64,000 bases of DNA, from the NCBI GenBank assembly GCA_965240325.2, contig OZ251227.1, forward strand, positions 3,100,001 through 3,164,000, read 5' to 3'. This document shows positions 8,411-27,782 of this stretch, piece after piece. The notes under the pieces were generated by a model. That model saw nothing but the letters and a program-made list of their open reading frames with translations, was not told the origin of the DNA and searched no databases. Every line of letters begins with the position of its first letter. Within the stretch, counting starts at the first letter, position 1. Origin of the DNA: Rebecca billardiae RCC1528. Its lineage: Eukaryota; Protista; Haptophyta. The position numbers and the translations under genes are program-made.

Positions 8411-9287
8411 GATCCGCGTGCTGGCGGGGTTCTTCCGCACGTACGCCGGTGTGTACGCCGTGCCGGAGGACACCTGGATCTTCGGCTCGGTGCACGCCCA
8501 GTCCACCGCCCAGGCGCAGGCGGTGCTCGGCACGGACCGCAAGCGCGTGCCGGTGGTGGACCTGAGTGCCGAGGTGCACGGCAACTGTACCCTGTTCGAG
8601 GTCAAGACCATCTCGCTGAGCCAGTCGCGCTACAGGGTGAGCGACGGCCGCAACGGTGCGGTGCGCCACCGCGCGGAACTCGTCCCGCGCGAGCGGCGCA
8701 AGCAGCTGCAGCTCCTCGACCGCGAGGTCTACGGCACGCTTGAGGGCCAGGTGGGCCCATACGAGGCGCGGCTCGACACCTTCCCCGCGATCGTCCCGAT
8801 TGTCGTGGGGGCGTTCGGCGAGTGGAGCGCGGAGGTGGACCTCACCCTCAAGAAGATCGCCAAGATGGGGCGGGACACGTGGCGCGCGCGCCTCAGCGCG
8901 CCCTCGCGCCCGGCCGCCGAGCGCGCGCTGCTCGGCACCATGCGGCGCGAGCTGGGCATGCGCTGCCTGCGTGGCCAGGCCAAGATGCTCATCGCCCGCG
9001 CGCGCATGGCGCACGTGCGCCCGGGGGCACGCGCCCGCGGGGGCGCTGCATACGACGACTACTTCGAGACGACGGCTGACGACGCGTGGCACCGCGACCA
9101 CCGCGGTGGCGCGCGCGCGTCGACGCCAGACGGTGCGTCGAGCTTCCGCTCGGCGATGGAGTGATGGGCGACTACGAGGGGGGGGGGGACGACGGCGAGG
9201 AGCGCTGATCCTGGTGTTTGTCTCTGCTGCTCGATCTGCTGCTACATTCTTGCTGACTCTGACGCCTGCCCGTTGCATACCACGTCG

Positions 9288-9290
<3 letters not shown>
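8411..9290 (+). mobile_element. 5'-truncated non-LTR retrotransposon (restriction-like endonuclease type, CRE-like), copy 1, flanked by (TA)n on both sides
   Basis: ORF remnant with PD-(D/E)xK-like VDL..FEVKT, IVPIVVGAFGEWS and RELGMRCLRGQA, typical of the C-terminus of REL-encoding retroelements. (TA)n at 8391-8410 and ~9290-9361. Homologous copies at ~24.3 and ~40.6 kb. Confidence 0.75.

Positions 9291-9361
<71 letters not shown>
9290..9361. repeat. (TA)n microsatellite
   Basis: Perfect TA run. Confidence 0.95.
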
Positions 9362-9364
<3 letters not shown>

Positions 9365-12039
9365 GGCCCGCGGTGCAGGGCGGAGCGCGTAGCGTGGAGC
9401 CCCGCCGGGGGCCCTCACTACGTTGTCAAAAAGATCTTTTGATCAAAGAAAAGGGGACGGGGGACGATTTTTACGGTTGTTGGAGGGTGAGTTTTCGCTT
9501 TTTCGAGGGGTAGATAGCTCTCTATCGCAAGATGCGGTTGACGAAATAGGCGCGCCCGGACGTGAGTAATAAGAAAGATCGAAGGCCGCTGGCCGTCACT
9601 TTGTCAGTAAAGTTTAGTCATCGTGTCATCGACGCTATTGAAAACTTGGTCGCCGGTCCAAGGGCCGTATTGTTTTGACAAAGTGCATGTGCATGGGTCA
9701 TATACTACGACTGTTTCAAACTGCATGTCGGCGTACCGAGCGCGCTGTTTGCCGGTTTGCATTATTTTGCGCACGCGGGGGTCATATTGAAAAAACCGTA
9801 GTAAACTGTAATCACGCCTTAACCAAGTGTGCACGTTAAAACATGGTAAATGGTAGAATATCGGGTTGAAGAATACTAACGACGAAGCTTTGCGCTCGCG
9901 TGGCTCGAGCGCGAGATGGATGAACCTCCTTTGCCATAATATGAAAGAAAAACGGGTTACCCGCCCGCCAGCGTCTCGCGACGAGGACGGGTGCCCTTAA
10001 GCGGCAAGCGCGCACATCATGATCATCGCCGTCGGCGGGCCCATCTTCGGCCGGCTCGAGCTGATGCACATCACGACGCTCAAGCAGGCGCTGTCCGTAC
10101 CGACGTTGGCGCGCCTCCAGCGGATGGTCGACAAAGCACCCGTGGGCGAAGGAGGACCACAATCATGGCCGAGTCATCGGAGACGTCGCTGACCTCGCGG
10201 CTTCAAACAATCAAACATCAACCGCTCAGCCGGTTGCCACCGCGGCCGAGCGGTGCGCGCTCGCCACCGCGGCCGGCGCTGTGCACGGGCGTGCTGAGCC
10301 CGGGCCGCGTGAGCTCGCCCACCTCGCCCGGCGCGCACGCCGACGCCGCCACCGCGGCTCGGCGGCCGGACTCATCTCGGCCCGCAGCGCTTGCGTCCCC
10401 CCGCGGCGGCGCGCGCCGCCGTCGCCGCCGCGCAGGCCGTGCACTCGGTGGATGAGGAGACGGCCCTGCTGCGCGCGGAGCGCTGCGCGCCGCGCGCTGC
10501 TCCTGCTGCGGCGCGCAGTAGTCCGCTCGTCCGCCCCGCGGGCTCGCCACGGAGCCGACGAGCGCGATGACGACAATCGAATGAGCACGAGTGCGCACGG
10601 AGGCGCTGGGCGCCGAGCTGGCGAAGCGCGGCGCCGAGCTCGACGCGCTGCGCGACGCGGCGACGGACGCGCTGGGCGCGCGCGGCGCCCTCGTCGCGAC
10701 GCCCCGTGCAGCAGCTCGAGCAGCCAGCTGTGGAGTAGACGGCCGTCGACTCGAGGGCGCCACCGTGCCGGGTGAGTGAGCACGCACGGGCTCCGCCTCG
10801 GTCGGAGGCTGGCTGGCCGCCGCCGTGGCTTCGAGGCCGACGCGGCGGAGGAGGCGGCGGGCGAGCACGGTGGCGCGGTGGAGCAGGCGCGCACGCGCGG
10901 CGGCAGGCGCGACCCACCGCTCGCCTCGTTCCACCCCGAGCTCCGCTCGGTCTCGCCTCTCGGTGCGCGGCTGCGCAGCGCCGTGAGCGCAGGCCGTGGG
11001 GCCGCTGGGGGTGGGGCCAGCAGAGTGGTGCGCGCTCTCGCTCTGCCGGCACGAGGCGCGCCGGCTGAGCGACCAGCGGCCCGTCGTCGAGCGCGTGGCG
11101 CAGCGCGAGCACCTCAAGGCAGGCTCGCCCTGCGCGCGCGCGCCGCTGCCCCGGCCGCCGTCCGTACTTCTTCGCGCGGGCCCGCGGCGACAGTCCTCAT
11201 CGGCCCGCCATGTTGACCAGACTGAGACAGCAGCCGACGGAGGGTGCACCGCGGGCCCCTAACTACGTTGGTTCTACGGAAGGACCGCGGAACGCGGTCA
11301 TATTACTAATTTAGCTGATCTGCTGATGCCGCAATTGTTGATTGAATAAAATTGTTGGACTTGGTGGCGGCCACTCTGACTCAGGGTTGATGATGATGAT
11401 CATGTTGTTGTCGTCGTCGACGTCGTCACGGGCCCGCCAGGAAGTGCAAGTATGGGAGTGGCCAAGATAGACGACATAGTCAGAGTGTAGCCTGGCAATT
11501 TGTAGTATAAGTAACTAGTCCATCAGTCTCTGATGACTCTGCCCTCTAGCTGCCGCAGGTGCTCGAGCAGGAGGCGGAGGACGCGACGCACCCGCGCGCG
11601 CACGGCGCGCTGGCGTACGACGCGCAGCAGATGCGCACGCCGGACAAGCAGCGCTCGACGCACGGCCCCTCGCCCGCCACCTCGCCCGGCCGCGCGCCGC
11701 GCGACGGCTTCGGCGCCGCCGCCGCTAACGAGCCAGATGGCCGTGACAACGGCGGCGGCGCGGAGGGCGCGGGCCCGTCGCAGATGCCGTCATCGGCCAC
11801 CTGCTAGTGCCTAGTGCTAGTGCCTAGTGCTGACGATGTACTGCTAGCATGAAGAGCATACAGTCGTGGGTCGTTGCGCATCATGAATGCTGCAGGTCTG
11901 GAGTGCCGAGGCTTGGTATGGTATGGGCCGAATAAAAAGGGGCGCGATTCCTGGGGATTCCTGGCGCGTCCCGCCGGTCGACGTAGAACGTAGAGCCCCG
12001 CTGGCCGCGCGTCAGGGCGACGGGACGCGCTGCTGGTCG

Positions 12040-14511
12040 ATGGTATCGACTGCGCCACCCCCAACGCCCCTGCCGCGCGCGCGCCTCGCGCTGGTGGCAT
12101 GGATGAACGTGAGCGAGGCGCTCGTGCACACGATGTGTCTCCCATTCGCCCCCTTCATGGTGCAGCACCTCATCGGAGCCGACGACGCGGATCCTCGCAT
12201 CGCGTACCTCCAAGGCTGTCTGGTCGCGGCGGCCAGCCTGGCCGAGTTCGTTGGCAGCTACCCGCTAGGCTTGCTGAGCGACCTGATCGGCCGGCGGCCG
12301 GTCATTCTGCTGGCCTTATTCGCGACCACCATTTGCACGCCGGCGTTTGGCTTCGCCACCTCGTACGAGATGGCTTTTGCTGCCCGCACAGTGCGCGGGC
12401 TGTGCGCGGCCGTCACGGGTACGACCAAGACGTACCTGTACGAGATCACCGACAGCTCGAATCGCGACCGCGCGTTTAGCGTGCTGATGGCATGCTACGG
12501 CTTCGCGCTGTGCATCGGGCCGACCCTCGGCGGCGCGCTCTCCGAGCCTGCCCGCACGTGGCCGTCCACCTTCCCCAATGGCTCTCTCTTCGACCGCCAC
12601 CCGTACGCGCTCCCGTGCGTCGTCGTCGCGGCGTGCAGCGGGGCGGCGGGCGTGTGCGCGTGGTTCATGCTCGCCGAGACCGTGCACCGACGCTCCCCGT
12701 CGATCTGCTGCCTCGACACCCAGCCGCTCTTGGACAAGGGCGCCGCGGACAGCGAGTCTGGCGATGCCTCGAAGCAGTCGGCTCAGGGTGGGTCTGACGC
12801 GAGCGGCAGTGCCGCTGGGCGTGGCGGCAGCAGCGCACTCGGCCGCACCGCCTGGCTGGCCGCGGTGCTGTACGGGATGGTCGCGCTGGTGGTGGAGATG
12901 ATACAGGTGCTGTGGGTGCTGTGGGCCAAGCTGCCCCTCGCCCAGCGCGGCCCGCACCTTGACGTGCGCACGATCGGCCTCTTGCAGGCGGTCGGAGGCG
13001 TGGGCATGCTCTTCTCGCAGGCGGTCCTCTACCCGCATGCCGTGCGCGCGTTCGGGCTCAGCCAGACGTTCCGCCTGGGCTGGGTCGGGCCGGTCGTCGC
13101 GTATGTGGCGATCCCCTTCACGGTCCAGCTCGCTCCGCCCGAGGGCGGGTGCTGGCCCTCCCCGTTCTGCGCGTTGCTGGCGGTGCTCGAGCTGCTGCAG
13201 ATGGCAAGCAGCTCGGCGCTCTTCACCTGCGTCATCCTGATGCTCTCCAACTCGGTGCCGAGCGGAGAGCTGGGAGCCGCGAACGGAGTGGGGCAGTCGA
13301 TCGCGTCCATGGCGCGCTTCGCCGCGCCGCTCTTCAGCGCTACTCTCGTCGGCCAGCTCGCCTCTGGCGCGCCTCCGCTCGACGTGCGGCTTGCCTTCTT
13401 TGCGGTGGCAGCGTTCGCGCTGCTCTCGGTGGCACTCTCGTACGCGCTGCCGCGCTCGATCGACCACGCGTTCGACGGCGCGGCATCGCTCGCTGGGGCG
13501 CCCGCGTCGCGGCGGCCGCACGACCCGAATCGTTTGCCAGCCGCGATCGAGCAGCGCATGATGTGCGCGCCGCTGGGGGCCGCTGACCCCCATGCCGTCG
13601 CGCTCGCGCGTGAGCGGCTCTCGGCGGAAGGGATGGTTGTGATCGACAAGGGCGCCGCGTTCTCCTCAGCGGACGAAGTGCGCGCATGGAGCGCGGCTCT
13701 TTTCTCGGCTGAGTATGACTACACTCGCAGCGGCGCGGCCGCTCGCGACAACCTGGGCGGCGGCGTGCTCGCCACCACCGGCAAGGCCGAGCGTTCGGCC
13801 GTTCAGCTTCTCGAGCACCCCGAGATGAGCTACGAGCGTGAGTACCCTGGGAAGCTGCTCTTTGCGTGCTTCGAGTGTCCGCCCGACAAGGCGCAGACGA
13901 CGCTGCTCGAGACCAGCGCTCTGACGCGCGCGCTGCGAGGGACAGCGCTCTGGCACAAGCTCGAGGCGCACGGCCTCACCTACCACTTCAAGTACTACTC
14001 TGCGGACGAGGTCGGTCCAGGCGGCCCGCCGCCAGTCCTGCGCCCGTGGCAGGACTTCTTCGGAGTGCGCACGCGCGCTGAGCTCGAGGCGGAGCTCGGG
14101 CGGCGGGGCATGCGCGCAGAGTGGCTCCAGGGCGAGGCCGGTGTGGTGCGTGTCTCACAGACCCTGCCTGCCTTCGAGCTGGACGACCAGGGGGACTTGC
14201 GTGTGCACTTCACCCTCGCCGTTCACGGCTGCAAGTTCGACCCTGACCCCGCGTGGAAAGGCGTGGCGCACATCGACAGGCCGTATCACTTCACGCTGGG
14301 GGACGGCGCCGAGCTGACGCACGCAGAGCTGGAGCTTGTAAGAGGCATGTACGACACGCACCGCGTGCTGCTGCCGTGGGTGCCCGGCAGGCTTGTCGTG
14401 CTTGACAACCAGCGCTGGATGCACGGCCGTGTCGCTTTTGCACTCGAACCACACGAGACGCGCAAGATCGGCGTCTGCACAGGGGAGAAGCGCACACGGC
14501 GCCTCGTATGA
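12040..14511 (+). CDS. MFS transporter (DHA1/ZIFL-like) fused to a C-terminal TauD/clavaminate-synthase-like Fe(II)/2-oxoglutarate dioxygenase
   Basis: Multiple hydrophobic helices, MFS motif A GLLSDLIGRRPV, and IGPTLGGALSEP..HPYALP. The same frame continues with EHPEMSY..PGKLLFAC (HxE) and VLDNQRWMHGR (distal His). The ORF is open from 11887; ATG 12040 is the likelier start. Confidence 0.8.
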   Translation: MVSTAPPPTPLPRARLALVAWMNVSEALVHTMCLPFAPFMVQHLIGADDADPRIAYLQGCLVAAASLAEFVGSYPLGLLSDLIGRRPVILLALFATTICTPAFGFATSYEMAFAARTVRGLCAAVTGTTKTYLYEITDSSNRDRAFSVLMACYGFALCIGPTLGGALSEPARTWPSTFPNGSLFDRHPYALPCVVVAACSGAAGVCAWFMLAETVHRRSPSICCLDTQPLLDKGAADSESGDASKQSAQGGSDASGSAAGRGGSSALGRTAWLAAVLYGMVALVVEMIQVLWVLWAKLPLAQRGPHLDVRTIGLLQAVGGVGMLFSQAVLYPHAVRAFGLSQTFRLGWVGPVVAYVAIPFTVQLAPPEGGCWPSPFCALLAVLELLQMASSSALFTCVILMLSNSVPSGELGAANGVGQSIASMARFAAPLFSATLVGQLASGAPPLDVRLAFFAVAAFALLSVALSYALPRSIDHAFDGAASLAGAPASRRPHDPNRLPAAIEQRMMCAPLGAADPHAVALARERLSAEGMVVIDKGAAFSSADEVRAWSAALFSAEYDYTRSGAAARDNLGGGVLATTGKAERSAVQLLEHPEMSYEREYPGKLLFACFECPPDKAQTTLLETSALTRALRGTALWHKLEAHGLTYHFKYYSADEVGPGGPPPVLRPWQDFFGVRTRAELEAELGRRGMRAEWLQGEAGVVRVSQTLPAFELDDQGDLRVHFTLAVHGCKFDPDPAWKGVAHIDRPYHFTLGDGAELTHAELELVRGMYDTHRVLLPWVPGRLVVLDNQRWMHGRVAFALEPHETRKIGVCTGEKRTRRLV

Positions 14512-14776
14512 TTTGTAGCTAGTAGTATATATATGCCCCTGGTCAGGATGAGCCCACTAGTAGTAGTACAGTGGCTATGAAGCCTGCGCTATATAAGACT
14601 AATTTTTTACTATTTCAATATATATATATATATTATGTGACACTGTAATCTCGCCTGCCTGAGCTGTGTGCGTCTCTTATTCTTAGTAAACTGTAGCTGC
14701 GCGCACGGATGCGACGTGCGTGGCTCCCAGACCCAGCACCAGCACAGTCGAGCGACGGCGCCGCCGCGCGCGGCCC

Positions 14777-16537
14777 TCACCACAGGCTCTGGCCGCCCTC
14801 GATCACGAGGTTGTGTCCCACCATGTACGAGGACGCGTCGGACGCGAGGTACACGACCGCCGCCTGCAAGTCCGTCACCTGCGCTAGCCGCCCGGCCGGG
14901 ATCTGCTCGAGCCAGGTGGCGGCAAGCTTGTTGAGTGCGGGGTTGTCCCAGATCAGGGGGGTGTCCACAATGCCAGGCGAGATGCAGTTGACGTTCAGGC
15001 CGCGCGACGCCCACTCGCACGCGAGAGACTGCGTCAGCTTGACCACGGCCGCCTTGGACGCGTTGTACGCCGCCTGCTTCTGCGGGTGCGGCACGAGCAG
15101 CGACGCCATCGACGCCGTGTTGATGATCTTGCCGCTGCCGCGCGCGAGCATGTGCCGCGCCTCGTGCTGGCAGCAGAGGAAGACGCCGCGTGTGTTGAGC
15201 GCGAACGTGAGGTCCCAGTCGGCGACGGGCGTGTCCTCGGCGGCGGAGTTCTTGTTCACGCCCGCGTTGTTCACCGCGATGTCGAGGGCGCCCTTCCACG
15301 CCACCGCCGCGTCGACCATCGCCTTGACGCTCCCCTCGTCCGCGCAGTCGGCGCGCACCGCCATCGCCTCTGCGCCCTTTGAGGCCAGCTCGGCGGCCAC
15401 CGCGTCCGCACGCGCCTGGTCCAGGTCGGCGACGGCAACGGCGGCGCCCGCCTCGGCGAGCGCGTGCGCGAAAGCGCGGCCGATGCCCTGTCCGCCGCCG
15501 GTCACGAGGGCCGTCTTGCCGCTCAGCTTGAGGCGGTCGAGGATGCGCGCCCCCCCCACGCCTCGCGTCACCTCGTCCGGGCCGGCTGCGCCGCTGGGCT
15601 GCGGCGGCGGCGCAGGGGCCGCCGCCGGCACGGGCGCCGCGGCAACCTCGGCGGTGGGCACCGGCGCCGGCAGCGGTGGCGCCGCGCCCTTCAGCCGCAC
15701 GATCGTGATCCCGTCGCGAAGCGGCAGCGTGACGATCTCGACGCGCGCGTCCGCCCTCACCATCTTGTTGAACTCGCGCAGCGCCTCGCCGCCCGCGTTC
15801 CAGCTGTGCGGGTCGTGCGCGGCGCGGCCGAGGTAGGGCACGCCCTTGAAGAGGACGTTGTCGATCACGATCACGCCGCCCGGCGCGAGCAGCCCACGCG
15901 AGAGCACCGTCTCGTAGTACGCCGCGTACGAGCCCTTGTCCGCGTCGATGAACACCATGTCAAGCGGCTGCGCCTGCGGCCACGCGCGCAGCGTCTCGAG
16001 CGCGTCGCCGATGCGCACGCGGATCTTGTGCCCGTGGGGCGACTTGTCGAAGATGGGGCGGGCAAAGGCCTCAAGGAACGGGTCCACCTCGCACGAGATC
16101 ACCTCGCCGTCCTCGGGCAGCGCCTCGGCGATCGTGAGCGCGCCGTAGCCGGTGAACATGCCGACCTCGAGCACGCGCCGGGCCTTGAGCATGTACGCAA
16201 ACATGGCGAGCGTCTTGGCCTCGACGATGTCCGTGGTCCACCGCTCGGAGAAGCGGAACACCGTCTTGCCCTGCGCGTGCAGCTCGTCCCACGGCGCGCC
16301 GCGCGTCTTCCGCTCGAGCTCGGCCGCCTCGGGTGACGGCGCAGACGTGCACTCGACCAGGTACTCGTCCAGGCCACGCGAGAGGCTGGCCGCCTCGTCG
16401 AGCAGGGCGGTGAGCCGCTCGTTGGGCGTGTCAGGCACGAACGCGACCTCCTGCGCGGACGGTGGCGCGGACGACTCCGCTTTCGCCGCAGCGGCGCCGT
16501 GCGCGCGAATGCCCGCGACCGAGCTGGCCTGCTCCAT
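14777..16537 (-). CDS. O-methyltransferase-SDR oxidoreductase fusion (MT-Ox-like, gadusol pathway)
   Basis: N-half: LEVGMFTGY, FIDADK, VIDNVLFKG (caffeoyl-CoA/MysB-type OMT). Pro/Ala linker. C-half: TGGGQGIG, NNAG, YNASK (classical SDR), ending GHNLVIEGGQSLW. The architecture and C-terminus resemble vertebrate MT-Ox as I recall it. Confidence 0.85.
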   Translation of the reverse strand: MEQASSVAGIRAHGAAAAKAESSAPPSAQEVAFVPDTPNERLTALLDEAASLSRGLDEYLVECTSAPSPEAAELERKTRGAPWDELHAQGKTVFRFSERWTTDIVEAKTLAMFAYMLKARRVLEVGMFTGYGALTIAEALPEDGEVISCEVDPFLEAFARPIFDKSPHGHKIRVRIGDALETLRAWPQAQPLDMVFIDADKGSYAAYYETVLSRGLLAPGGVIVIDNVLFKGVPYLGRAAHDPHSWNAGGEALREFNKMVRADARVEIVTLPLRDGITIVRLKGAAPPLPAPVPTAEVAAAPVPAAAPAPPPQPSGAAGPDEVTRGVGGARILDRLKLSGKTALVTGGGQGIGRAFAHALAEAGAAVAVADLDQARADAVAAELASKGAEAMAVRADCADEGSVKAMVDAAVAWKGALDIAVNNAGVNKNSAAEDTPVADWDLTFALNTRGVFLCCQHEARHMLARGSGKIINTASMASLLVPHPQKQAAYNASKAAVVKLTQSLACEWASRGLNVNCISPGIVDTPLIWDNPALNKLAATWLEQIPAGRLAQVTDLQAAVVYLASDASSYMVGHNLVIEGGQSLW

Positions 16538-16668
16538 CCTTGTTGATTGCTCGTTGGCCGGCGATCAGCGAATTGATGAGAATGTACCTGAACCTTCATC
16601 AATGCATCAACGCGTCTGACCTTCCTCGTGACCTTCCTTTGATTCCGCGCATCCGCTACTTGATCCCT

Positions 16669-19600
16669 GAGGGACCACGACCGAACTCGTGCCAGAGGAG
16701 GTGGGGGTCGCACTGGCACCTCCTCTGGCCGACCCCCACCTCCTCTGGGGCTCCAGAGGAGGTGGGGGTCAGTGGCGCCGCGGCTGGGAGGCGCGGGGCC
16801 GACGCGGGTGCGTGCCGCGAGCCCTCGTCTCGGGCGCGCATCACCGCGTGCACAGCGCGCGCGGGCGCCCTGGCGCGCGCGCATCGCCTGCGTGCACTGA
16901 GTGAGCCTCAATCTCCCGCTGCGCGCTGCCTCGAACGCGCATCGCCACTCGCACGCGCAGGCCTGCCCCGCACGGCTTGGGCTTTTGAGCACCGGCTGGC
17001 GGCGGCGCGCCGGGTCAGGGCTTGGCCGGTGATGCGGCCTTCGCCCTGACCGAGACTTGGCGGAGGCGTGGGTAGTGCCATCGCCTGCCCGGATCCCGGG
17101 CCTCGCCGTCAGAGTGTACACGCGAGGCGCGCTGTCGTGGTTGACAGGTGAGGCGGTGCGCGCTCGCCCTCGAGCAGGCAGCGGACGTACCGGCAGGCGC
17201 GCGCGAGCACAGCGGGGCTGTCGAGCTGCTTCCGGCTGGGTAGATCGACGGTGCATGCCCTGGTCCTGGTCTGGGAGGCCTGCGCGGGTTCGGAGACCGG
17301 TGAACGCTCGGCGCGGACCCATGTCTTGCTGGGCACGGTTGCGCGACAGCTCAGCAGCCAGTCTCGAGGATGAGTGGCATCAGAGCGCTTGCCGGCGTGC
17401 TGGCGGACTCAACCACCGGGCCGATGCCCACGCCTTGGCCGGGATGCGACCAGCCCCGGAGTCCTCCGCAGCCGCCTGCCGCCGTCGACCCGCCGCCCAA
17501 GGCCCGCGGCCGGCGGGCCGCGCTGTCCTATAGCCCGCGGCACGCAGCAGGCCGCAGGACGCGCTGCGTCAGCGCGAGAGGGCTGAGTTCGTGAGGGATA
17601 TCCTCACCACGTCTGGAAGAGTTCTAGGAGCTGACGCAGGTTCACGGACCGTAGGCTGCTCGTCATTCGTCCCGCGACCCGGCAGCGGGCAGCATCAGGC
17701 TCAGCTTCCCAGTCGTCGGCTGACGACTTGACAATCAATCCTTGATCGCGGTCCTTCAGTCAGCTGCGAGCGCCCGGCGCCATCGTGCCCGCGCGGCGCC
17801 GGCTGGCTGCCGACGACAGCGACCTGAGACGGCCGGACGGTGGTGCATGCTGCTCATTGCCGCGTCCGAATGTACGTGGCGCCGAGCGCGTCACGGCCGG
17901 TCGTTCTATACGCGATAGATCCGCCGCACTAGCCTATGGCCGCACCACCGGCCACCGGGTGTTCGTTGCCATTGGGCCCGGCGGTGCGGCGCGCGGCACC
18001 GGCCGGCGGTCCACTGCTGACACTCGTTCCGTCACGGCAGCTTCTAGGATGCCAGTCGCGTGGGCATAGCGCGCCTCTCTGCCCGCGCGGCATGTGGGAT
18101 GATGTCAGGCTGCCGGATGTGACTGGCTTGGACCACTGACCAGGCCGCGGGAGCATGTCGCTGATGCATTCCAGAAGACTTCTCAGGGGAACCAGACGAT
18201 GACGGACGAGTGTAGGCTATACTTCTAATGCTGCTGAACTTGCTTGAGAAGGGCCACTCGTCGTGATCAATCGAGTCGTCACGTGATACTGACGCCAGAA
18301 TCGACGCGCCACTTGCCGGCAAAGTTAGAAGGCAGAACAACTCGCGTGTAGTTCCGTTGAGAGCGTATGTACGGTATGGCTGCGGCTGCAACGCGCAGTC
18401 GTCTGACGCAGTCATAATCAGCCAGCACTCAGCAGGAGCGCAGATTTTATGATGCTGGCCCGCCGTATCGTCTGCAGGCGCTTGCCCAAGGTGGTAGTGG
18501 GGCGGGTGGGACGCGGTTGAGTGGCACGTGACGAACTCTGAGTCGCGATGACATCTTATGCTGCTGGTCCGCGCAATGACTCAATAATCGATACGTACTG
18601 CGCCGCGCTGGTGCTAGGTCGGATGCCGAGCAGCAGCCTACGGTCGCTAAGTAGTCTAAGTCAGTTCATCAAACTTCACCAGACTGGGCGGTGGCGATCG
18701 TCTCTCTCATTGACTCGGCCTTCCTGAGGTGACGCAGCGATCCCGCAGTGCCCTCCTTCATGTCTGGGCAACCCTGCCGCCCGAGCTTTGCCGAGTGGGT
18801 GGCCTGCGGCCCGAACCTGGCGGCAGCGCCAACGCCCGGAGCTTGGCCGCGCTGTGTCCCTGCCAAGCTGTGACCAAGGGTGACAGTGACGAAGGAGTCT
18901 CGCCCCGCACCGCCGCCCTAGCCGCCTCACAGCCCGTCTCCGTCGCGGCCGCTGAACCCGCCGCCGAGCCAGCCACCGTTCCCAAGCCACCGTCACCGCT
19001 GCCGAGCTCACGGCCACTCCGCCGCTCACAGCCATCGTCGCCAAGTCGCCGCCACCAAGCCCACCACGGACAACCAAGCCCGTCTCATCAACCCCAGCGC
19101 CAAGCCTAGCGCTGGGTTCGCCCCCTTCGCCGCCACCGACTCCGCCCCCGAGCCCACCGCCGCTAAGTCCATCGCCGAGCCCGGCCGCCATCACCGCCAC
19201 TAAGCCCACCTCGAGCCTGCCGCTGCCGTCGCCGCTACCGACCCCGCTGCTGAGCCCACCACCGTCATCACCGCCTACATCGCCGCCACACAGCCCGCCG
19301 CTGAGCCTGCAGCCGTCGCTGCCTACATCGCCACCAACAAGCCCGCTACCATCATCGCCGCCATCAGCACCGCCTCCGACCACGCCGCCGAGCTCGCTGC
19401 CGAGCCCGCTACCGTCGCCGCCGCCTGCGCTGCCACCAAGCCGGCAGCCGATCCCACCGCCAAGTCTGCCACGTTAGCCACCGCCGAGCTCACCGCCGAG
19501 TCCACCGTCATCGCCGGCACCGAAACCGCCATCCTCGCCGCCGCCAAGCCCGCTATCAAGCCCGCCTCCGCCGCCTCCGCCGCCGAGCCCGCCTCCATCC

Positions 19601-20511
19601 CCACCACCCTCGCTGCCGCCCAGCCCGCTCGACCGCCTGTTCCTCTGGCCATCCGCCGCGCGGCCCGCCGGCCGCGGGCCTTGGGCGGCGGGTCGACGGC
19701 GGCAGGCGGCTGCGGAGGACTCCGGGGCTGGTCGCATCCCGGCCAAGGCGTGGGCATCGGCCCGGTGGTTGAGCCCGCCAGCACGCCGGCAAGCGCTCTG
19801 ATGCCACTCATCCTCGAGACTGGCTGCTGAGCTGTCGCGCAACCGTGCCCGGCAAGACATGGGTCCGCGCCGAGCGTTCACCGGTCTCCGAACCCGCGCA
19901 GGCCTCCCAGACCAGGACCAGGGCATGCACCGTCGATCTACCCAGCCGGAAGCAGCTCGACAGCCCCGCTGTGCTCGCGCGCGCCTGCCGGTACGTCCGC
20001 TGCCTGCTCGAGGGCGAGCGCGCACCGCCTCACCTGTCAACCACGACAGCGCGCCTCGCGTGTACACTCTGACGGCGAGGCCCGGGATCCGGGCAGGCGA
20101 TGGCACTACCCACGCCTCCGCCAAGTCTCGGTCAGGGCGAAGGCCGCATCACCGGCCAAGCCCTGACCCGGCGCGCCGCCGCCAGCCGGTGCTCAAAAGC
20201 CCAAGCCGTGCGGGGCAGGCCTGCGCGTGCGAGTGGCGATGCGCGTTCGAGGCAGCGCGCAGCGGGAGATTGAGGCTCACTCAGTGCACGCAGGCGATGC
20301 GCGCGCGCCAGGGCGCCCGCGCGCGCTGTGCACGCGGTGATGCGCGCCCGAGACGAGGGCTCGCGGCACGCACCCGCGTCGGCCCCGCGCCTCCCAGCCG
20401 CGGCGCCACTGACCCCCACCTCCTCTGGGCCCCAGAGGAGGTGGGGGTCGGCCAGAGGAGGTGCCAGTGCGACCCCCACCTCCTCTGGCACGAGTTCGGT
20501 CGTGGTCCCTC
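16669..20511. mobile_element. 3843 bp non-autonomous foldback/DNA transposon with ~855 bp terminal inverted repeats and 5 bp target-site duplication TCCCT
   Basis: 16669-17523 is the near-perfect reverse complement of 19658-20511. Ends are GAGGGACC...GGTCCCTC, with TCCCT at 16664-16668 and 20512-20516. No transposase motif seen inside. Confidence 0.9.
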
Positions 20512-21374
20512 TCCCTGATGATTCCCTGGGATGAAAAGCGGCGTGGTAGTCATATCATAATGATGATGATTACCGTGGGCGTAAAACATACTTTAGTTAA
20601 ATAAATCACGCCTTAACCAAGTGTGCACGTTAAAACATAGTAAACTGTATCATCACATCATTCATTAAATAGTACGTTGAACGTGTACGGTATTGATGGT
20701 GCAAGAAAACCTAGAGCCCCGACCGTTACACGGGTATATTAGGTCTCAGCGGCATGATGGGCATCCGGCGAATAAGTCATTCTGGGTCTCCCTGACACCA
20801 TGATACAGGCCCAACACCTCCAGGGACCTGAGCATCACCCTGGGACCTAATATTGCAGTCTGAAGTTGGGTGGGTCACTCTCGACGACGGCACGGCGGAC
20901 GGTCGTGATGCACGCGGGACAGCACATCAGGGGCATTCGGTGCACTAGCGAGGGTGGCATACGATGTCATCCCGACGTATGCATCCGTAGTATACTTGCC
21001 CGGCCCCAGGCGCCCTGTCATCCGGCACAATGTCACGTGCGCGGGCTTCACGCGGTCGTGATCGCGGGGTTCAACATGCTGTTCCGAACGAGCGCACGCA
21101 CGCGCGCCGGCGCGAGGCTAGCGAGAGGAATGCACCCCTCGCGTGCTCGCGCGGGCAAACGCACTTCGAGAGCATCCCACAGGCGCCAAGAACTTCCTCC
21201 GATGGCGATGCGCAAGCCGCTAGCCCCCACAAGCGCGGGGCGAACCACGCCGCAGGGCGGTGTCGCCGCTTCCCGCGCTGGGCCGGGGCTCTAGGTTTTC
21301 TTGCAACGTCAATATTTCCTCCGGACTGTCCATCCCGGATCGGTGAACGTTCGCGCGATTCACGGGGGACGAAG

Positions 21375-22808
21375 ATGGTGGGCCCCGCCACCTTCCAACT
21401 TGCCTGCGTGCTCCTTGCCGGCGTGCACTCGCCGCTGCACACCTCCACGCGCGTTACGGCGTTGCGCGGGCACGCCGACACGCTCGCGTTCTATGACGAC
21501 GCCTGGCACGCCCACGCCGACCCATCAACCGTGCCGCCGCACGCCGTGCGCTCGGCCGCGACGATCAAGGAGGACTCGCTGCCGTCCTCCTCCTCGCCCG
21601 GGACCTCTACGACCGAGTGGGCCGTGCGCGCGCCGCTCACGTTCGAGTACCGCGTGATCGAAGCGCCGCGCCTCTTCCACCCCGACAACGACGCCCTGCT
21701 CTTCGGCCACCTCGCCCCCGGCTCGGCCGCGCGCGCGCGCGCGCGCGAGCAGCGGCAGCGGCGGCTGGTTGTGATCGACCAGACCGTCGACGAGCTGTTC
21801 GGCGACGGGCTACGCGCGTACCTCGAGGCTCGGCGCGTGGATCACCAGATTGTCGCACTGCCCATGCTCGAGGAGACCAAGGACGTCGACCTCGTTCTCC
21901 AGGTCGCCGAGGCGATGAAGCGCTTTGAGCTCGCGAGGCGCGACGAGCCGGTGATCGCGATCGGCGGCGGCGTCTGCCTCGACGTGGTCGGCCTCGCTGC
22001 GACGCTCTTCCGGCGCGGCACGCCGTACATCCGCGTGCCCACGACGACGCTCTCGTACGTCGACGCCTCGGTCGGCGCCAAGTCCGGCGTCAACTTCATG
22101 GGCTCCAAGAACCGGCTGGGCGCGTATGTGCCGCCCGCGGCCGCGCTGCTTGACCCGAGCTTCCTGCGCACAGAGTCGGCGCGAGGCGTCTCGTCGGGCC
22201 TCGCGGAGATGGCGAAGATGGCGCTGGTCAAGTCGCCCGAGCTGTTCGAGCTGCTCGAGGCGCACGCCGAGCGCCTCGTCGCGCACCGCTTCCAGCCGCT
22301 CTCCGCGCGCGACGGCGTGCCCGGCCGCGTGCTCGGACTGTCAGTCCGGCTGATGCTGGACGAGCTGGCGCCCAACCTGTGGGAGGCGTCCCTCGACAGG
22401 CTGGTCGACTTTGGGCACGTGCTCGGGCAGGAGCTCGAGCTGCGCACGCTCGGCACGGAGCACGAGCTGACGCACGGCGAGTCCGTCGGCGTGGACATGG
22501 CGTTCATGACCGTCCTCGCCGCCGTGCGCGCGCAGATCAGCGAGGCGCAGCGTGACCGCATCCTGGCGATGCTGCGCCGCTGCGCCATCCCGGTGTACAG
22601 TGCGATGGTCGACGAGGCGCTCGTGCTCAGCGCGATGGTCGAGCGCCGCGCGCAGAGCATGGGACAACGACTGCCACTCCCCGTCGGGGTGGGCAAGGCA
22701 CGCATCTTCAACGACGTGAGCGAGGACGAGCTGCTTGGGGCACACCGCGCCTGGACCGACCTCTGCTGCACGCGACCGCCACCGGCGACACCGGCGACGC
22801 GCCGTTAG
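21375..22808 (+). CDS. Sedoheptulose 7-phosphate cyclase, 2-epi-5-epi-valiolone synthase (EEVS)-type
   Basis: GGGVCLDVVG, YIRVPTT, DASVGAKSGVN, KNRLGAY, MLDELAPNLWE, RLVDFGH and HGESVGVDM. In-frame ATG 21375 followed by a signal-like peptide. Confidence 0.88.
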   Translation: MVGPATFQLACVLLAGVHSPLHTSTRVTALRGHADTLAFYDDAWHAHADPSTVPPHAVRSAATIKEDSLPSSSSPGTSTTEWAVRAPLTFEYRVIEAPRLFHPDNDALLFGHLAPGSAARARAREQRQRRLVVIDQTVDELFGDGLRAYLEARRVDHQIVALPMLEETKDVDLVLQVAEAMKRFELARRDEPVIAIGGGVCLDVVGLAATLFRRGTPYIRVPTTTLSYVDASVGAKSGVNFMGSKNRLGAYVPPAAALLDPSFLRTESARGVSSGLAEMAKMALVKSPELFELLEAHAERLVAHRFQPLSARDGVPGRVLGLSVRLMLDELAPNLWEASLDRLVDFGHVLGQELELRTLGTEHELTHGESVGVDMAFMTVLAAVRAQISEAQRDRILAMLRRCAIPVYSAMVDEALVLSAMVERRAQSMGQRLPLPVGVGKARIFNDVSEDELLGAHRAWTDLCCTRPPPATPATRR

Positions 22809-23155
22809 TTGGAGCGCGCGACCACGCGGCGAGGAGGGCGTGCCCATTCGCATCGCACGGGTTCGATGCTGTACCTTTCCTAGATGACGGAATCAGATGA
22901 GGCGGCCGCTGCACGCGCCTTCATCCAGGCGTAGCTACGCCTGGATGAAGGGTGGACGGACGAATACTGTACACCACCGACGTCGGGGGTCCGCCAGATG
23001 AAGTTGGGGACTGTCTTCGGAGCGGGAATCAGAGCAGCCGAGAGACACCCTTCCGACCGGTATGATAGAGCATCAGCGGCTTCGTCAGTACAATACAATG
23101 ATGAGTTCACCCCAGATTCACCCCAGCCACTCCGCTCAGCCGACGCCACGTCACG

Positions 23156-24151
23156 ATGCTCTACGCTGTCACTGGCGCGAACGGCTTCATCGCCTCCCAC
23201 GTGGTGAGCAAGCTGGTCGAGCAGGGCCACAAGGTGCGTGCAACGGTGCGCAAGCCCGACGACGAGGCCAAGCTCGCCCACCTCAAGTCGCTCGGCGCGC
23301 CGGTCGAGATCGTCGTGCTTGCCGACCTCACGTCCGCAGAAGAGGTGGCGCCCGCGCTCAAGGGCTGCGACGGGCTCTTCCACATGGCGGCGGTGCACCC
23401 GACGTACGGCTTCGAGGAGACGCCCGAAGGCGCCGATGCGATCATCGCCCTCGCGGTCGAGGGCACCAAGGCGGTGCTCAAGGCGGCGGCCGCCGCGGGC
23501 GTGAAGCGTGTCGTCCTCACGAGCTCACTCGCGGCCGTCGAGTGTGGCAACGACACGGGCGTGCTGACCGAGGCGACATGGTCAAGGGAGGAGGTGTACA
23601 ACAGCTCAACATCGACGCAGTGGAAGACGCATCACGCGTACGTCAAGTCCAAGACGCTGCAGGAGCGCGCCGCGCTCGCCGCCGCCGCCGAGCTCGGGCT
23701 CGACCTGCGCGTGATCGCGCCGGGCAACCTATGCATCGGGCCAATCCTCAGTACACACATCAACGGCACGATGACGCGCGTGCGCGACGTGGTGCAGGGC
23801 TCAAACACGCTGAAGGGCTGCGCAGACCTCGGTGTAGTCCACGTCTCCGACGTCGCGCACGCGCATGTCGCCGCGATGACCACCGACTCCGCAAGCGGCC
23901 GTTACATCGTCGCGCAGAGCATGGTGCGGCTGGAGGACGTGTTCAGTGCGCTCAAGGAGCTCTGCCCGGACCGGCCGGTGGCGCCGATGACGAACATGGA
24001 CTACGCGTCGGGCACGCCGGGCAAGGCGCGCGCGATTGAGAGCCGCACCGAGGCTGAGCTGGGCGTGCAGTACGTGCCACTCAAGCAGACGCTCAAGGAG
24101 GCGGTCGACTCGATGGTGAGCAAGGGCTTCATCCAGGCCGCCGCCGCGTGA
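23156..24151 (+). CDS. NAD(P)-dependent epimerase/dehydratase / aldehyde-reductase-like extended SDR (DFR/CCR-like)
   Basis: VTGANGFIASHV, FHMAA, VLTSSLAAV and YVKSK catalytic motif. Confidence 0.88.
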   Translation: MLYAVTGANGFIASHVVSKLVEQGHKVRATVRKPDDEAKLAHLKSLGAPVEIVVLADLTSAEEVAPALKGCDGLFHMAAVHPTYGFEETPEGADAIIALAVEGTKAVLKAAAAAGVKRVVLTSSLAAVECGNDTGVLTEATWSREEVYNSSTSTQWKTHHAYVKSKTLQERAALAAAAELGLDLRVIAPGNLCIGPILSTHINGTMTRVRDVVQGSNTLKGCADLGVVHVSDVAHAHVAAMTTDSASGRYIVAQSMVRLEDVFSALKELCPDRPVAPMTNMDYASGTPGKARAIESRTEAELGVQYVPLKQTLKEAVDSMVSKGFIQAAAA

Positions 24152-24171
24152 AGACTGAATATAAGAACGCA

Positions 24172-24173
<2 letters not shown>

Positions 24174-24254
<81 letters not shown>
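24174..24254. repeat. (TA)n microsatellite
   Basis: Perfect TA run just after the reductase stop codon. Confidence 0.95.
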
Positions 24255-24256
<2 letters not shown>

Positions 24257-24748: not shown

Positions 24749-24956
24749 AATATATCTATATAGATATATATAGATATATATACATATCTATCTATCTATC
24801 TATATTCGGAGTATTACTCCTGCTAAGACTATAGGCTACAATTCAGCACTCAGCAGCTGCAGACTGTAGTAGCTACGGAGTACCGTATGATCGGGCCGGG
24901 CTGCGTGTAGCAGGCTGGGCACCACTCCTCGTCCAGCGACCGCGGGCTGCGCATCG

Positions 24957-26438
24957 TCAGTCGCCGTTCTCCTCCGTCATCTTGCCGATGCACAGGTCGA
25001 CCTTCGCCCAGCGGTTGCCCGACCACACGTTGCGTGCGAGCAACACGGGCACGTGTACGCAGTGCTGCGCGATGAATGGCAGCGGGTCAGCAGCGTCCCA
25101 GTACGCATCCTTCTTGCTTGCGAAGATGTGCAGCGCTGCGCGCGCGCGCTCGAGCACCGAGAGCCCGCGCGGCGCGAGCACCTCGTAGTACAGATCGGCC
25201 AGCGTCCAGTTCACCTCCTCCGCGGCCGGCACCGGCTGCACCGCGTCCGCGGGCGCGTCCGCGTTGGCCGCCATCGCACTCGGTTCCGCGAGCAGCGCGC
25301 GGCCAAAGTCGGCCATGTTGCGGTGGTACGAGGTGACGTTGGACGAGAGCCGTGGGTTGCACTCGATCGCGCGCGCCACGCCGTCCTCGCCGACGAAGAA
25401 GTCGATGCAGACGATGCCGCTCAGCTTGTACGTGCGCACGAAAGCGCTCACCCAGTTGAGGATGGCCGAGTTGCCCGCGTGCGTGTAGTTGAAGCACGAG
25501 ATTGACGCCTGGTTGTCCGTGAAGGTGAGCACGCGCCCGTCAGTGCACAGCGCGCACGAGGAGTACTCGACGCCCTCGAGCACCTCCTGCACGAGCCACG
25601 GCGCCTCCGCGCTCACGGCGAGCCCCGAGACGTACGCGCGCAGCTGTTGCTCCGCGCACGGCAGCTGGAAGAGGTCGAGCCTGCGCATCGGGTCGTAGTT
25701 GCACGACTTGAGCAGGTAGCGCTTGGGCGAGTGGCGCGGGAGAGCGGCGTTGAACGCGAGGATCTCGTCCATCGAGCGCATCCGCTGCGTGTCCGGCATG
25801 GGTAGCCCCGCCTCCTTCGCCTTCCGCGCGAACACGACCTTGTCGTCAAGCGCGAGCACGTCCTGCTCACAGAGCGACCAGCTGCGCACGCCCGGCGGGA
25901 GGCGCGAAAAGGCGCGCGCCTCGTACCGGCTGGCGGAGGGCGAGGTGACCGGCACGACGAGACTTGCGCCCTCGCGCTCGACCAGCTCGCTGATCGCGCG
26001 CTCGAACGCCTCGGACTGCTGCTCGGGGACAGGCACCGTCACAAACCTGTCCACGTGCCTGGAGAAGCGCGACGCCACCATCCAGTACTTGCGCGTCTCG
26101 ACGAGGATGACGCGGCAGCCCGCGGCGCGGAGCGCGCGGCACATGACGAGCGACTTCGTCATCTTACCGCCCGTCACGATCGCCGTCTTGCCGTTGAGCG
26201 CCAGCGGGCGCTCGCGGCCGCGCTTGCGCAGCCACTCGAGCGCCGCGCCGACGATCGCAGCCGTCACGACAAGGGGCGCGAGCATGGCGAGGCAGCCGAG
26301 GCAGAGCAGAGACCACGCGCGGGGCTCAATCATGTCGCGCAGGGAGCGCGCATGCGTTGCCACCGGCGAAGCCTCGCCCTGCTGCGCGCGCAGCGCATCC
26401 CCGACTCCGCGCGGCTCGATCGTGCAGGGCAGGCACAT
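24957..26438 (-). CDS. mysC: ATP-grasp ligase, MysC-like (mycosporine-glycine synthase type)
   Basis: TGGKMTKSL, ETRKYW..SRFS, LDDK, LKS..YDPMRRLDL, IECNPR, DPLPF and K.DLCIGK, all characteristic of MysC. The start could be 26438 or 26333. Confidence 0.88.
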   Translation of the reverse strand: MCLPCTIEPRGVGDALRAQQGEASPVATHARSLRDMIEPRAWSLLCLGCLAMLAPLVVTAAIVGAALEWLRKRGRERPLALNGKTAIVTGGKMTKSLVMCRALRAAGCRVILVETRKYWMVASRFSRHVDRFVTVPVPEQQSEAFERAISELVEREGASLVVPVTSPSASRYEARAFSRLPPGVRSWSLCEQDVLALDDKVVFARKAKEAGLPMPDTQRMRSMDEILAFNAALPRHSPKRYLLKSCNYDPMRRLDLFQLPCAEQQLRAYVSGLAVSAEAPWLVQEVLEGVEYSSCALCTDGRVLTFTDNQASISCFNYTHAGNSAILNWVSAFVRTYKLSGIVCIDFFVGEDGVARAIECNPRLSSNVTSYHRNMADFGRALLAEPSAMAANADAPADAVQPVPAAEEVNWTLADLYYEVLAPRGLSVLERARAALHIFASKKDAYWDAADPLPFIAQHCVHVPVLLARNVWSGNRWAKVDLCIGKMTEENGD

Positions 26439-26639
26439 CGTCGTCAGAATCGTCGGGAGACTACGAGAATACTACTACAGTCTTAGGAATCATCTATCGA
26501 TCGAGGAATCCGAGCGCGCGGGAAAAGCTGGTACTGTACAACGCGCGGATTCTCACGTCCTCGAGTCGCAGCGGCCCCGTTGTCACAGGCGACCACCCCA
26601 GTTCTCCAGGATCGTGATCCTTCCGCGCCGTGCGCGACG

Positions 26640-27782
26640 ATGCCAGCGGCCGAGGACAAGATGCGCGTGGTGCATCTGATGGGCTCCGCCGTGTCGGCGT
26701 ACTACGAGAGCCTGAGCACATTCTACGCGCAGGGCTGCGTCGACGGCGCGCAGGACGAGCTGACACGCGCCCACTTTGACTTTGCGTTTGCGATCGTGCA
26801 CGCGACCGCGGATGGGCCGCGCTGGTCGTTCCCAGCCGAGCTCTCCGAGAAGGCGATCGCGGCCGCGCCGCGTCTGACGCACGCGGAGGGTGTCCAATGC
26901 CTTGCCGCGATCGACGCCGACGTGTGCGTGCCGCACATGTTCTGCTACCCCGGCATGACCACCTATCGCGCCCTGCTCGACATGCTGGGCGTGCCGATCC
27001 TGGGTTGCCCGCCGGCGTGCATGGCGCTGGCGACGGACAAGTTCCAGACGCGCGCGGTGGTCGCGGCGGCGGGCGTGCGCGTGCCAACGGGCGAGCTCCT
27101 CCGCGCGGGCGAGCGCCCCAGCCTCGCGCTTCCCTTCGTGCTCAAGCCGTGCCGCGAGGACAATTCTATGGGCGTCTCGGTCGTGCGCCGGCCAGAGGAG
27201 CTCGACGCGGCGCTCGCCGAGGCGTTCCGCTTCGACGAGCGCGTGGTGTGCGAGCAGTTTGTGCCACCCGGCCGCGAGATCCGCTGCGCCGTGATCGAGG
27301 ACGAGCACGGCGAGCCCACGCGCGTGCTGCCGTGCCTCGAGTACTTTCTGAGCGAGGAGCACCCGATCCGCACGCCAGGGGACAAGCTGGCGAGCAGCGA
27401 GGACGGCAAGGTGACGGGGCTCGCGTCCGGAGCGCGCAAGTGCCCGGCGGAGCTGTCGGACGAGCTGCGCGCCAAGCTCGCGGATGCCACGATCCGCTCC
27501 CACCGCGCACTGGGCTGTCGCGACTTCTCGCTCTTCGACTTCCGCGTCGACCCGGAGGGCGAGGTGTTTTTTCTCGAGGCGTGCCCGGTGTGCTCCTTCT
27601 CGCCAAAGAGCGTGATCGTCTCGCTGGCGGACGCGGCGGCCGACGCGGATGTGGCGCACCCGGCGCTCTTCCACACGCTGCTCCGCCGGGCAGCTGGACG
27701 AGGCCAGAAGTGCAAGCCCAAGGCCAAGCCAGACGAAAAGCCAGTGCAGGTCTTTGGCATGCATGCAGACTGTGCGCGGTAG
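26640..27782 (+). CDS. mysD: D-Ala-D-Ala ligase-like protein, MysD-like (disubstituted MAA synthase type)
   Basis: HLMGSAVS.YY..LS..YA, PHMFCYPGMTTYRALLD, KPCREDNSMG, SLFDFRVD and FLEAC..CSFSPKS; divergent from mysC. Confidence 0.88.
   Translation: MPAAEDKMRVVHLMGSAVSAYYESLSTFYAQGCVDGAQDELTRAHFDFAFAIVHATADGPRWSFPAELSEKAIAAAPRLTHAEGVQCLAAIDADVCVPHMFCYPGMTTYRALLDMLGVPILGCPPACMALATDKFQTRAVVAAAGVRVPTGELLRAGERPSLALPFVLKPCREDNSMGVSVVRRPEELDAALAEAFRFDERVVCEQFVPPGREIRCAVIEDEHGEPTRVLPCLEYFLSEEHPIRTPGDKLASSEDGKVTGLASGARKCPAELSDELRAKLADATIRSHRALGCRDFSLFDFRVDPEGEVFFLEACPVCSFSPKSVIVSLADAAADADVAHPALFHTLLRRAAGRGQKCKPKAKPDEKPVQVFGMHADCAR

Follow-up and report, generated by a model that had tools for sequence, protein, structure and literature searches.

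The question raised by this locus is whether an alga carries, in vertebrate form, the second and last enzyme of the pathway to gadusol, a sunscreen compound, and whether such a gene tells us where the vertebrate one came from. We analyzed a window of 64,000 nucleotides from the haptophyte Rebecca billardiae RCC1528 (contig OZ251227.1, positions 3,100,001 to 3,164,000; all coordinates below count from the first nucleotide of this window). On its minus strand, at 14777-16537, lies an open reading frame (ORF) that fuses an O-methyltransferase (OMT) to a short-chain dehydrogenase (SDR), and head-to-head with it stands a gene for a sugar phosphate cyclase. Judging from sequence comparison, we consider it likely that the ORF is the algal ortholog of vertebrate MT-Ox and acts in gadusol synthesis by the pathway proposed below.

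Architecture and motifs of MT-Ox

The gene and its parts are as follows, with the basis of each assignment in brackets.

14777..16537, minus strand: MT-Ox coding sequence, 586 amino acids plus stop, single exon (ORF list, translation, Pfam, homology)
15689..16426, minus strand: N-terminal helical extension and cation-dependent class I O-methyltransferase domain, residues 38-283 (Methyltransf_3, 3CBG)
15581..15688, minus strand: Pro/Ala-rich interdomain linker, residues 284-319 (composition, variability, model confidence)
14780..15580, minus strand: classical short-chain dehydrogenase (Ox) domain, residues 320-586 (adh_short_C2, motifs)
14669..14776, minus strand: probable 3' untranslated region of MT-Ox (shared end of three public contigs)

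The ORF runs through 586 codons without interruption, with an in-frame stop 10 codons 5' of the first ATG. Both Pfam domains fall in one frame, Methyltransf_3 at residues 101-281 (E 1.9e-44) and adh_short_C2 at residues 350-583 (E 1.5e-59), and the segment between them (residues 284-322) consists of 13 prolines and 13 alanines among 39 residues and differs in both length and sequence among the aligned homologs. An AlphaFold2 model built from a 41-sequence alignment had a mean predicted local distance difference test score (pLDDT) of 83 and showed two confident domains (mostly 80-98; 80-97 in the methyltransferase part), with residues 286-317 modeled as a disordered linker (pLDDT below 50). The predicted TM score of 0.50 is explained by the undefined orientation between the two domains. 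The preliminary description of this locus, which was made from the sequence letters, had read an OMT domain, a Pro/Ala linker and an SDR domain in a single frame, and domain search, composition and model all agree with that reading.

We examined motif conservation in a set of 41 sequences from algae, chytrids, chromerids and fish. In the methyltransferase (MT) half, the S-adenosylmethionine (SAM) motif VLEVGMFTGYG, the FIDADK motif (D198, D200 and K201) and D226-N227 were invariant in all 41; the FIDADK and DN motifs also align with those of 3CBG, an O-methyltransferase that is the closest solved structure. The same held in the SDR half for TGGGQGIG (346-353), D371, NNAG (423-426), N448, S476, Y491 and K495, and its best solved relatives were polyol or sugar dehydrogenases and FabG-type reductases. 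The predicted cofactor and catalytic motifs of the window protein are thus intact in full, and with the acidic residue D371 terminating strand 2, NAD+ is probably preferred over NADP+. At the other end of the gene, three public contigs that are independent of one another (L014-L016) share one endpoint at window base 14669, which, if they represent transcripts as we presume, suggests that the MT-Ox mRNA ends 108 nt past the stop codon.

Homologs of MT-Ox

When the window MT-Ox was searched against 5.8 billion proteins with a word index, only full-length homologs came back, hundreds of them at E <1e-170, which excludes chance as the origin of this ORF. The closest named relative was AURANDRAFT_30097 of the pelagophyte Aureococcus anophagefferens (72% identity), followed by transcripts of the coccolithophores Calcidiscus and Coccolithus (62-64%) and by dozens of fish zgc:113054 proteins (54-56% over 92-95% of the query), while the proteins of Pycnococcus and Vitrella, at 48-50%, fell below the fish. 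The zebrafish protein (Danio rerio LOC541322/zgc:113054) matched with 56% identity over 92% of the length (E 2.4e-176), and it aligns collinearly with the window protein all the way from the helices at the N-terminus to GGQSLW at the C-terminus, with only the linker varying; in the Ox half the identity rises to 66%. Algal and fish proteins also share the segment directly preceding the SDR fold, D-x-V-x-GV-x-x-x-x-ILDR. When 1.84 billion cluster representatives were searched exhaustively and protein names were looked up, the same fusion was found in Pycnococcus, the chromerid Vitrella, the chytrid Rhizophlyctis and a frog.

Zebrafish MT-Ox is the one protein for which the conversion to gadusol has been demonstrated: the recombinant protein turns 2-epi-5-epi-valiolone (EEV) into gadusol with SAM and NAD+ in vitro, by a postulated route in which the C-2 or C-3 hydroxyl is oxidized, followed by enolization and O-methylation (Osborn et al. 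2015, PMC4426668).

Outside the fusions, the nearest standalone OMTs to the MT half came from a metagenome-assembled genome (MAG) of Myxococcota, from Tilletia fungi and from the oyster Pinctada. The Myxococcota OMT (L011) is 46% identical to the MT half, and its gene lies directly downstream of one for a cyclase resembling dehydroquinate synthase (DHQS). The nearest standalone or otherwise-fused SDRs to the Ox half were found in Caldilineaceae bacteria, a foraminifer and a nemertean. We found no bacterial operon of cyclase, MT and Ox genes: the closest standalone bacterial Ox relatives (Caldilineaceae SDRs at 51% and a metagenomic SDR at 56% identity) have unrelated neighbors, and in a metagenome scan with the family alignment and two SDR motifs none of 80 loci, nearly all of them standalone bacterial SDRs, carried an MT half or the cyclase.

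Some of these relatives are unusual in their N-terminal parts. The protein of the frog Pseudophryne corroboree (P0280) is 65% identical to the window in the Ox half and about 24% in the MT half, where the Pfam match is weak (7.7e-12); this MT half may be decaying or remodeled, or the gene model may be wrong. The SDR domains of P0138 (nemertean Lineus longissimus) and P0134 (foraminifer Nonionella stella) are 52-58% identical to the Ox half, no methyltransferase domain was detectable in their N-terminal regions, and both branch just outside the MT-Ox fusions.

The partner cyclase and the divergent pair

The gene facing MT-Ox belongs to the DHQS family; its ORF spans 21030-22808 on the plus strand, with the likely start at 21375.

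21375..22808, plus strand: EEVS-type sedoheptulose-7-phosphate cyclase, divergent partner (DHQ_synthase and DHQS_C domains)

Among solved structures, the best match of the cyclase was the EEV synthase (EEVS) ValA (4P53) with 285.7 bits, compared with 189.6 bits for MysA, a desmethyl-4-deoxygadusol synthase (DDGS; 5TPR), a difference of 96 bits. The identities of both structures are confirmed by PMC10666671. We told EEVS and MysA apart at three positions, ValA Leu267, Asp281 and His360, for the first two of which mutagenesis has confirmed importance (PMC10666671). The equivalents of Leu267 and Asp281 are EEVS-type in the window cyclase, in all its algal relatives and in zebrafish; the third position is taken up below, where the product of the cyclase is weighed. 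The window cyclase is 63% identical to the Aureococcus cyclase adjacent to MT-Ox. Many of its near relatives are OMT-cyclase fusions that lack an SDR domain (P0406, P0407, P0415, P0439 and P0450); these group with a cyclase of the dinoflagellate Pyrodinium and have the EEVS-type Leu and Asp.

As a separate observation, the N-terminus of the cyclase (21375-21500) is hydrophobic and signal-like, MVGPATFQLACVLLAGV, and MT-Ox (16420-16537) has no such presequence; the two proteins may thus differ in their compartment.

With the DHQS-family ORF on the opposite strand, the two genes stand head-to-head, 14777-16537 on the minus strand against 21375-22808 on the plus strand, just as the preliminary description had it. 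It had also stated that vertebrate EEVS and MT-Ox are adjacent and divergent, and had asked for a comparison of gene orientation. We compared nine related loci by gene calls and tblastn, with gaps measured between gene ranges.

Head-to-head, with the gap in each case: 1567 bp in zebrafish (L003), <0.9 kb in Aureococcus (L002), 1585 bp in the green prasinophyte Pycnococcus provasolii (L098), 410 bp in one environmental algal contig (L001) and 690 bp in two further ones that are nearly identical to each other (L005 and L006)
Without a cyclase neighbor: an environmental contig (L007) and the chytrid Rhizophlyctis rosea (L097)
Gene only: a zebrafish-type transcript contig (L004)

The vertebrate arrangement is confirmed for the zebrafish locus, and the same divergent orientation recurs in Aureococcus, Pycnococcus and the environmental algal contigs. 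The conserved core of the locus is this divergent pair, the sole constant feature in an otherwise shuffled set of accessory genes. A universal pairing of MT-Ox with the cyclase has to be rejected, as L007 and the Rhizophlyctis locus have no cyclase within reach. The Rhizophlyctis fusion (L097:10001-12198) is 51% identical to the window protein and contains introns; there is no cyclase within 10 kb, and its MT half groups with the standalone Tilletia OMTs.

The spacer and an insertion-free allele

In the window, 4837 nt separate the ATG of MT-Ox from that of the cyclase, and this distance includes two insertions.

16538..16668, no strand assigned: MT-Ox proximal upstream region, 131 nt, common to the insertion-free allele (collinear with L014 and L015 to the insertion point)
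16669..20511, no strand assigned: foldback (long terminal inverted repeat) transposon, 3843 nt (inverted arms, TCCCT duplication)
20693..21312, no strand assigned: 620-nt element resembling Stowaway/mariner miniature inverted-repeat transposable elements (terminal inverted repeats, TA duplication)

The arms of the foldback element (16669-17523 and 19658-20511) are about 855 nt each and 99-100% complementary, and the element is bordered by a 5-bp duplication, TCCCT, at 16664-16668 and 20512-20516. Its center (18900-19630) contains degenerate GC-rich direct repeats of 41- and 31-nt families, in 7-10 copies with 64-81% identity. The 620-nt element has inverted ends of 34 nt that are 91% complementary, is flanked by TA at 20691-20692 and 21313-21314, and ends 62 nt 5' of the cyclase ATG.

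An identical MT-Ox protein was predicted from all three public contigs. Public Logan contigs (runs ERR14847148 and ERR14847151) encode it with 99.95% nucleotide identity and extend directly to the cyclase gene, of which they cover the first 373 nt. Comparison of L014 (1-2521), L015 and L016 with window positions 14669-16669 and 21313-21747 revealed that L014 and L015 lack both insertions and have a single copy of each target site, as well as lacking about 88 nt of AT-rich spacer, which leaves 279 nt between the two ATGs. An allele or strain free of both transposons therefore exists. The earlier estimate of about 1 kb between the genes once the transposon is removed is right as far as the foldback element goes, since 989 nt remain without it, but it missed the 620-nt element, and the insertion-free allele is tighter still, at 279 nt.

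Accessory genes

Three further genes sit downstream of the cyclase, and another ORF converges with MT-Ox.

23156..24151, plus strand: extended-SDR/epimerase-type reductase, accessory (Pfam Epimerase and NAD_binding_10)
24957..26438, minus strand: ATP-grasp (MysC-like) gene, accessory (ATP-grasp_3, E 3.1e-06)
26580..27782, plus strand: D-Ala-D-Ala-ligase-type (MysD-like) gene, accessory (Dala_Dala_lig_C, E 1.3e-23)
11887..14511, plus strand: major facilitator superfamily (MFS) transporter and TauD-like dioxygenase in one ORF, convergent with MT-Ox (MFS_1 and TauD domains)

In L001 and L005, MT-Ox has homologs of the reductase (54-58% identical) and of the MysC-like protein (50-52%) nearby, and a more distant MysC-like homolog (25%) is present at the Pycnococcus locus. 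In L005 (428-2734, 768 aa) a ligase is fused to an old yellow enzyme, and the MysD-like protein shares 51% identity with that ligase half; it is 38.5% identical to an 870-aa fusion of MysC-like and MysD-like proteins that stands beside the pair in Pycnococcus (L098:3926-6538). The Aureococcus locus contains no MysC-like, MysD-like or reductase homologs within 10 kb, and the order and orientation of accessory genes are different at every locus. The MFS/TauD ORF has no close homolog at the related loci, where unrelated MFS genes occur near the pair in L001, L005 and L098; it is a neighbor with at most a putative link to the pathway. An Rfam scan of window positions 9000-29000 found no RNA family.

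Phylogeny of MT-Ox and the cyclase

To place the vertebrate genes, we built trees of the full-length fusion, of its two halves and of the cyclase, from a set without Coccomyxa, Chromochloris and Klebsormidium, in which one frog was the only tetrapod. Groups for the approximately unbiased (AU) tests were chosen after the trees had been seen, and several branches are long; given this and the gaps in sampling of tetrapods and of the published green algae, the p values below are to be read as indications only.

In the full-length tree (quick method), vertebrates formed one clade (99) and the core algae another (99), the latter splitting into a clade of the window protein with Aureococcus and a coccolithophore clade. 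In the tree of the Ox half, made by a careful method with outgroups, all fusions formed one group (94/82), within which the vertebrates (100/99) were the sister group of the algal and chytrid fusions as a whole (99/93), not nested among them; forcing them together with the core algal (haptophyte/pelagophyte-type) group cost 11.5 log-likelihood units (AU p 0.027). In the tree of the MT half the deep branches were poorly resolved and standalone OMTs were interspersed. A group of fish and core algae alone was rejected (AU p 0.0065, without the standalone OMT P0142), while fish and core algae together with P0142 were not rejected (AU p 0.16).

The spliced zebrafish cyclase was entered as single exons (L003:4656-5267, 2130-2366 and 1589-1825) and not as a joined model, so the vertebrates are represented in the cyclase tree by one 204-aa exon only. 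In a quick tree this exon fell between two algal groups, and a single clade of all algae apart from zebrafish was not rejected (p 0.19).

The preliminary description had suggested a joint phylogeny, in which the OMT and SDR halves could turn out to branch apart from vertebrate MT-Ox. The Ox halves stay together with it, and for the MT half no separation can be demonstrated. Its larger suggestion, a fuller ancestral algal cluster that gave rise to the vertebrate pair, is only partly sustained: MysC-like, MysD-like and extended-SDR genes are indeed present and recur, but there is no sign that the window lineage was the vertebrate source. The proposal of an algal donor was published by Osborn et al. 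2015 (PMC4426668). As the trees give no nesting, yet the halves were not shown to be separate, the idea of an ancestral source is neither established nor refuted by our data. What can be said is that nothing in the trees places the vertebrates inside or beside the window lineage.

Proposed pathway and its alternatives

If the ORF is the MT-Ox ortholog that we consider it to be, sedoheptulose 7-phosphate would be converted by the cyclase to EEV, a ring hydroxyl of which would be oxidized by the C-terminal NAD+-type SDR domain; after enolization, the N-terminal metal- and SAM-dependent O-methyltransferase would methylate the enol, and gadusol would be formed. The cyclase and MT-Ox genes could be driven divergently from the short spacer they share, 279 bp in the insertion-free allele, and gadusol would probably be handed to the MysC-like and MysD-like ATP-grasp ligases, giving mycosporine-like amino acids (MAAs) with a gadusol core.

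Several of our observations weigh against this pathway. The third diagnostic residue deviates from the EEVS type: the equivalent of His360 (window 22650-22690, cyclase residues 426-438) is occupied by Gln in the window protein, by Leu in that of Aureococcus, by Phe in the second algal group (clade B) and by Asn in a dinoflagellate, and zebrafish has His there. In the tree, moreover, the algal cyclases are sister to OMT-cyclase fusions of dinoflagellates, in which the Ox domain is absent. For these two reasons the product of the cyclase is not certainly EEV. Strict monophyly of the MT halves of the fusions, to the exclusion of standalone OMTs, was rejected (AU p 1e-14), and the foldback element, which stands 131 nt upstream of the MT-Ox ATG, might disturb the regulation of the gene. 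The two cyclase points, together with the additional reductase gene in the cluster, could mean that the pair makes another C7-cyclitol, either 4-deoxygadusol or some other oxidized and methylated cyclitol, by an SDR step unlike that of fish. We regard this as unlikely: Leu267 and Asp281 have EEVS-type equivalents throughout the algae and zebrafish, the EEVS structure is much the better match, and the catalytic residues of the Ox domain do not vary from fish to algae, which points to a common chemistry.

The remaining alternatives accept the pair and differ about its history. According to one, the window locus or its lineage represents the ancestral cluster from which vertebrates took their two-gene module by horizontal transfer. 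The published proposal of an algal donor, the head-to-head pair common to algae and zebrafish, the greater identity of the window MT-Ox to fish than to Pycnococcus or Vitrella and the place of the zebrafish exon between two algal groups all speak for it, but the rooted Ox tree sets the vertebrates beside all algal and chytrid fusions, their union with the haptophyte/pelagophyte-type clade is disfavored by both halves, and a single algal cyclase clade apart from zebrafish is not rejected by the data; we find this history rather improbable. The ancestral full cluster is in any case not reconstructable, because the accessory order differs everywhere and Aureococcus has the pair only. Far less credible still is a separate origin of the MT-SDR fusion in algae and vertebrates with a convergent likeness of the loci. 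The interspersion of MT halves with standalone OMTs (myxobacterial MAG, smut fungi, oyster), the rejection of their strict monophyly and the further OMT/SDR and OMT/cyclase fusions met in our searches would be expected under such convergence; yet every fusion falls into a single group by its Ox half, an MT clade of fish, core algae and one standalone OMT is not rejected, the proteins of algae and fish align collinearly even in the segment preceding the SDR fold, and both have the same divergent cyclase partner. More speculatively, and in our view improbably, the head-to-head EEVS and MT-Ox genes might be an ancient mobile two-gene unit, kept intact from prasinophytes through haptophyte- and pelagophyte-type algae to vertebrates, with clusters of four to five genes as the ancestral form, of which vertebrates and Aureococcus kept the bidirectional core. 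Such a history assumes a short shared promoter and, if true, would make the pair with MysC, MysD and the reductase the ancestral algal state.

Relation to known systems and significance

The orthology to vertebrate MT-Ox remains our preferred explanation, and the window locus can be set beside several described systems. With zebrafish MT-Ox (zgc:113054) the window protein has in common the domain order, the identity along nearly the whole length, all motifs and a divergent EEVS neighbor; it differs in its longer Pro/Ala linker and its single exon, and its activity is a prediction. The zebrafish locus has no MysC-like, MysD-like or reductase genes, whereas the window has all three. The pair of Aureococcus, where, as in Coccomyxa, a bifunctional MT-Ox adjoining the EEVS gene has been reported (Osborn et al. 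2015, PMC4426668), is closest in the identities of both proteins, in its head-to-head orientation and in falling into the same tree clade, but it likewise stands without these three genes nearby. A four-gene neighborhood of EEVS, MT-Ox, ATP-grasp and OMT genes was described in Klebsormidium, Chromochloris and Coccomyxa by Foflonker & Blaby-Haas 2021 (PMC7826186), who proposed a gadusol-core MAA as its product and gave separate phylogenies of the MT and Ox domains. It resembles our locus in that genes for MAA-type ligases accompany a gadusol pair of the vertebrate type; the window has in addition a MysD-like and an extended-SDR gene, has no extra standalone OMT and belongs to another lineage. 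The Pycnococcus locus combines a MysC-MysD fusion with the cyclase, MT-Ox and an MFS gene.

Two other kinds of OMT can be set aside. MysB of cyanobacterial-type MAA clusters belongs to the same Methyltransf_3 group as the window MT half, but it lacks an SDR domain, and its substrate, the DDGS product, needs no oxidation; a MysB-type standalone OMT is ruled out here, because the window OMT is fused to an SDR and its neighbor is EEVS-type and not MysA-type. The cyclase halves of the dinoflagellate OMT-cyclase fusions are 52-57% identical to the window cyclase and group with it, but in them the OMT, 31-41% identical to the window MT half, is joined to the cyclase and no SDR is present. In the window, the cyclase has a gene of its own on the other strand, which rules out a fusion of that type.

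The kind of system and the idea of its algal origin are already known. Our literature search found no report of an EEVS/MT-Ox pair or cluster in haptophytes, and what is new lies in the detail: another algal lineage with the pair and the MysC-like, MysD-like and reductase genes, a head-to-head orientation kept across six lineages, an allele free of the transposons, and a wider occurrence of the fusion, which is present in a prasinophyte, a chromerid and a chytrid as well.

For the family as a whole, the divergent orientation emerges as the one constant feature from green algae and haptophyte- and pelagophyte-type algae to fish. Our trees do not point to a donation of the vertebrate genes by the window lineage and so temper that story. 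The genes are compact and intron-free, and could be used for expression tests and for sunscreen bioproduction. Finally, the linkage of the pair to MysC/MysD-type ligases beyond the green algae predicts that gadusol-core mycosporine-like amino acids would be found in abundant marine phytoplankton.

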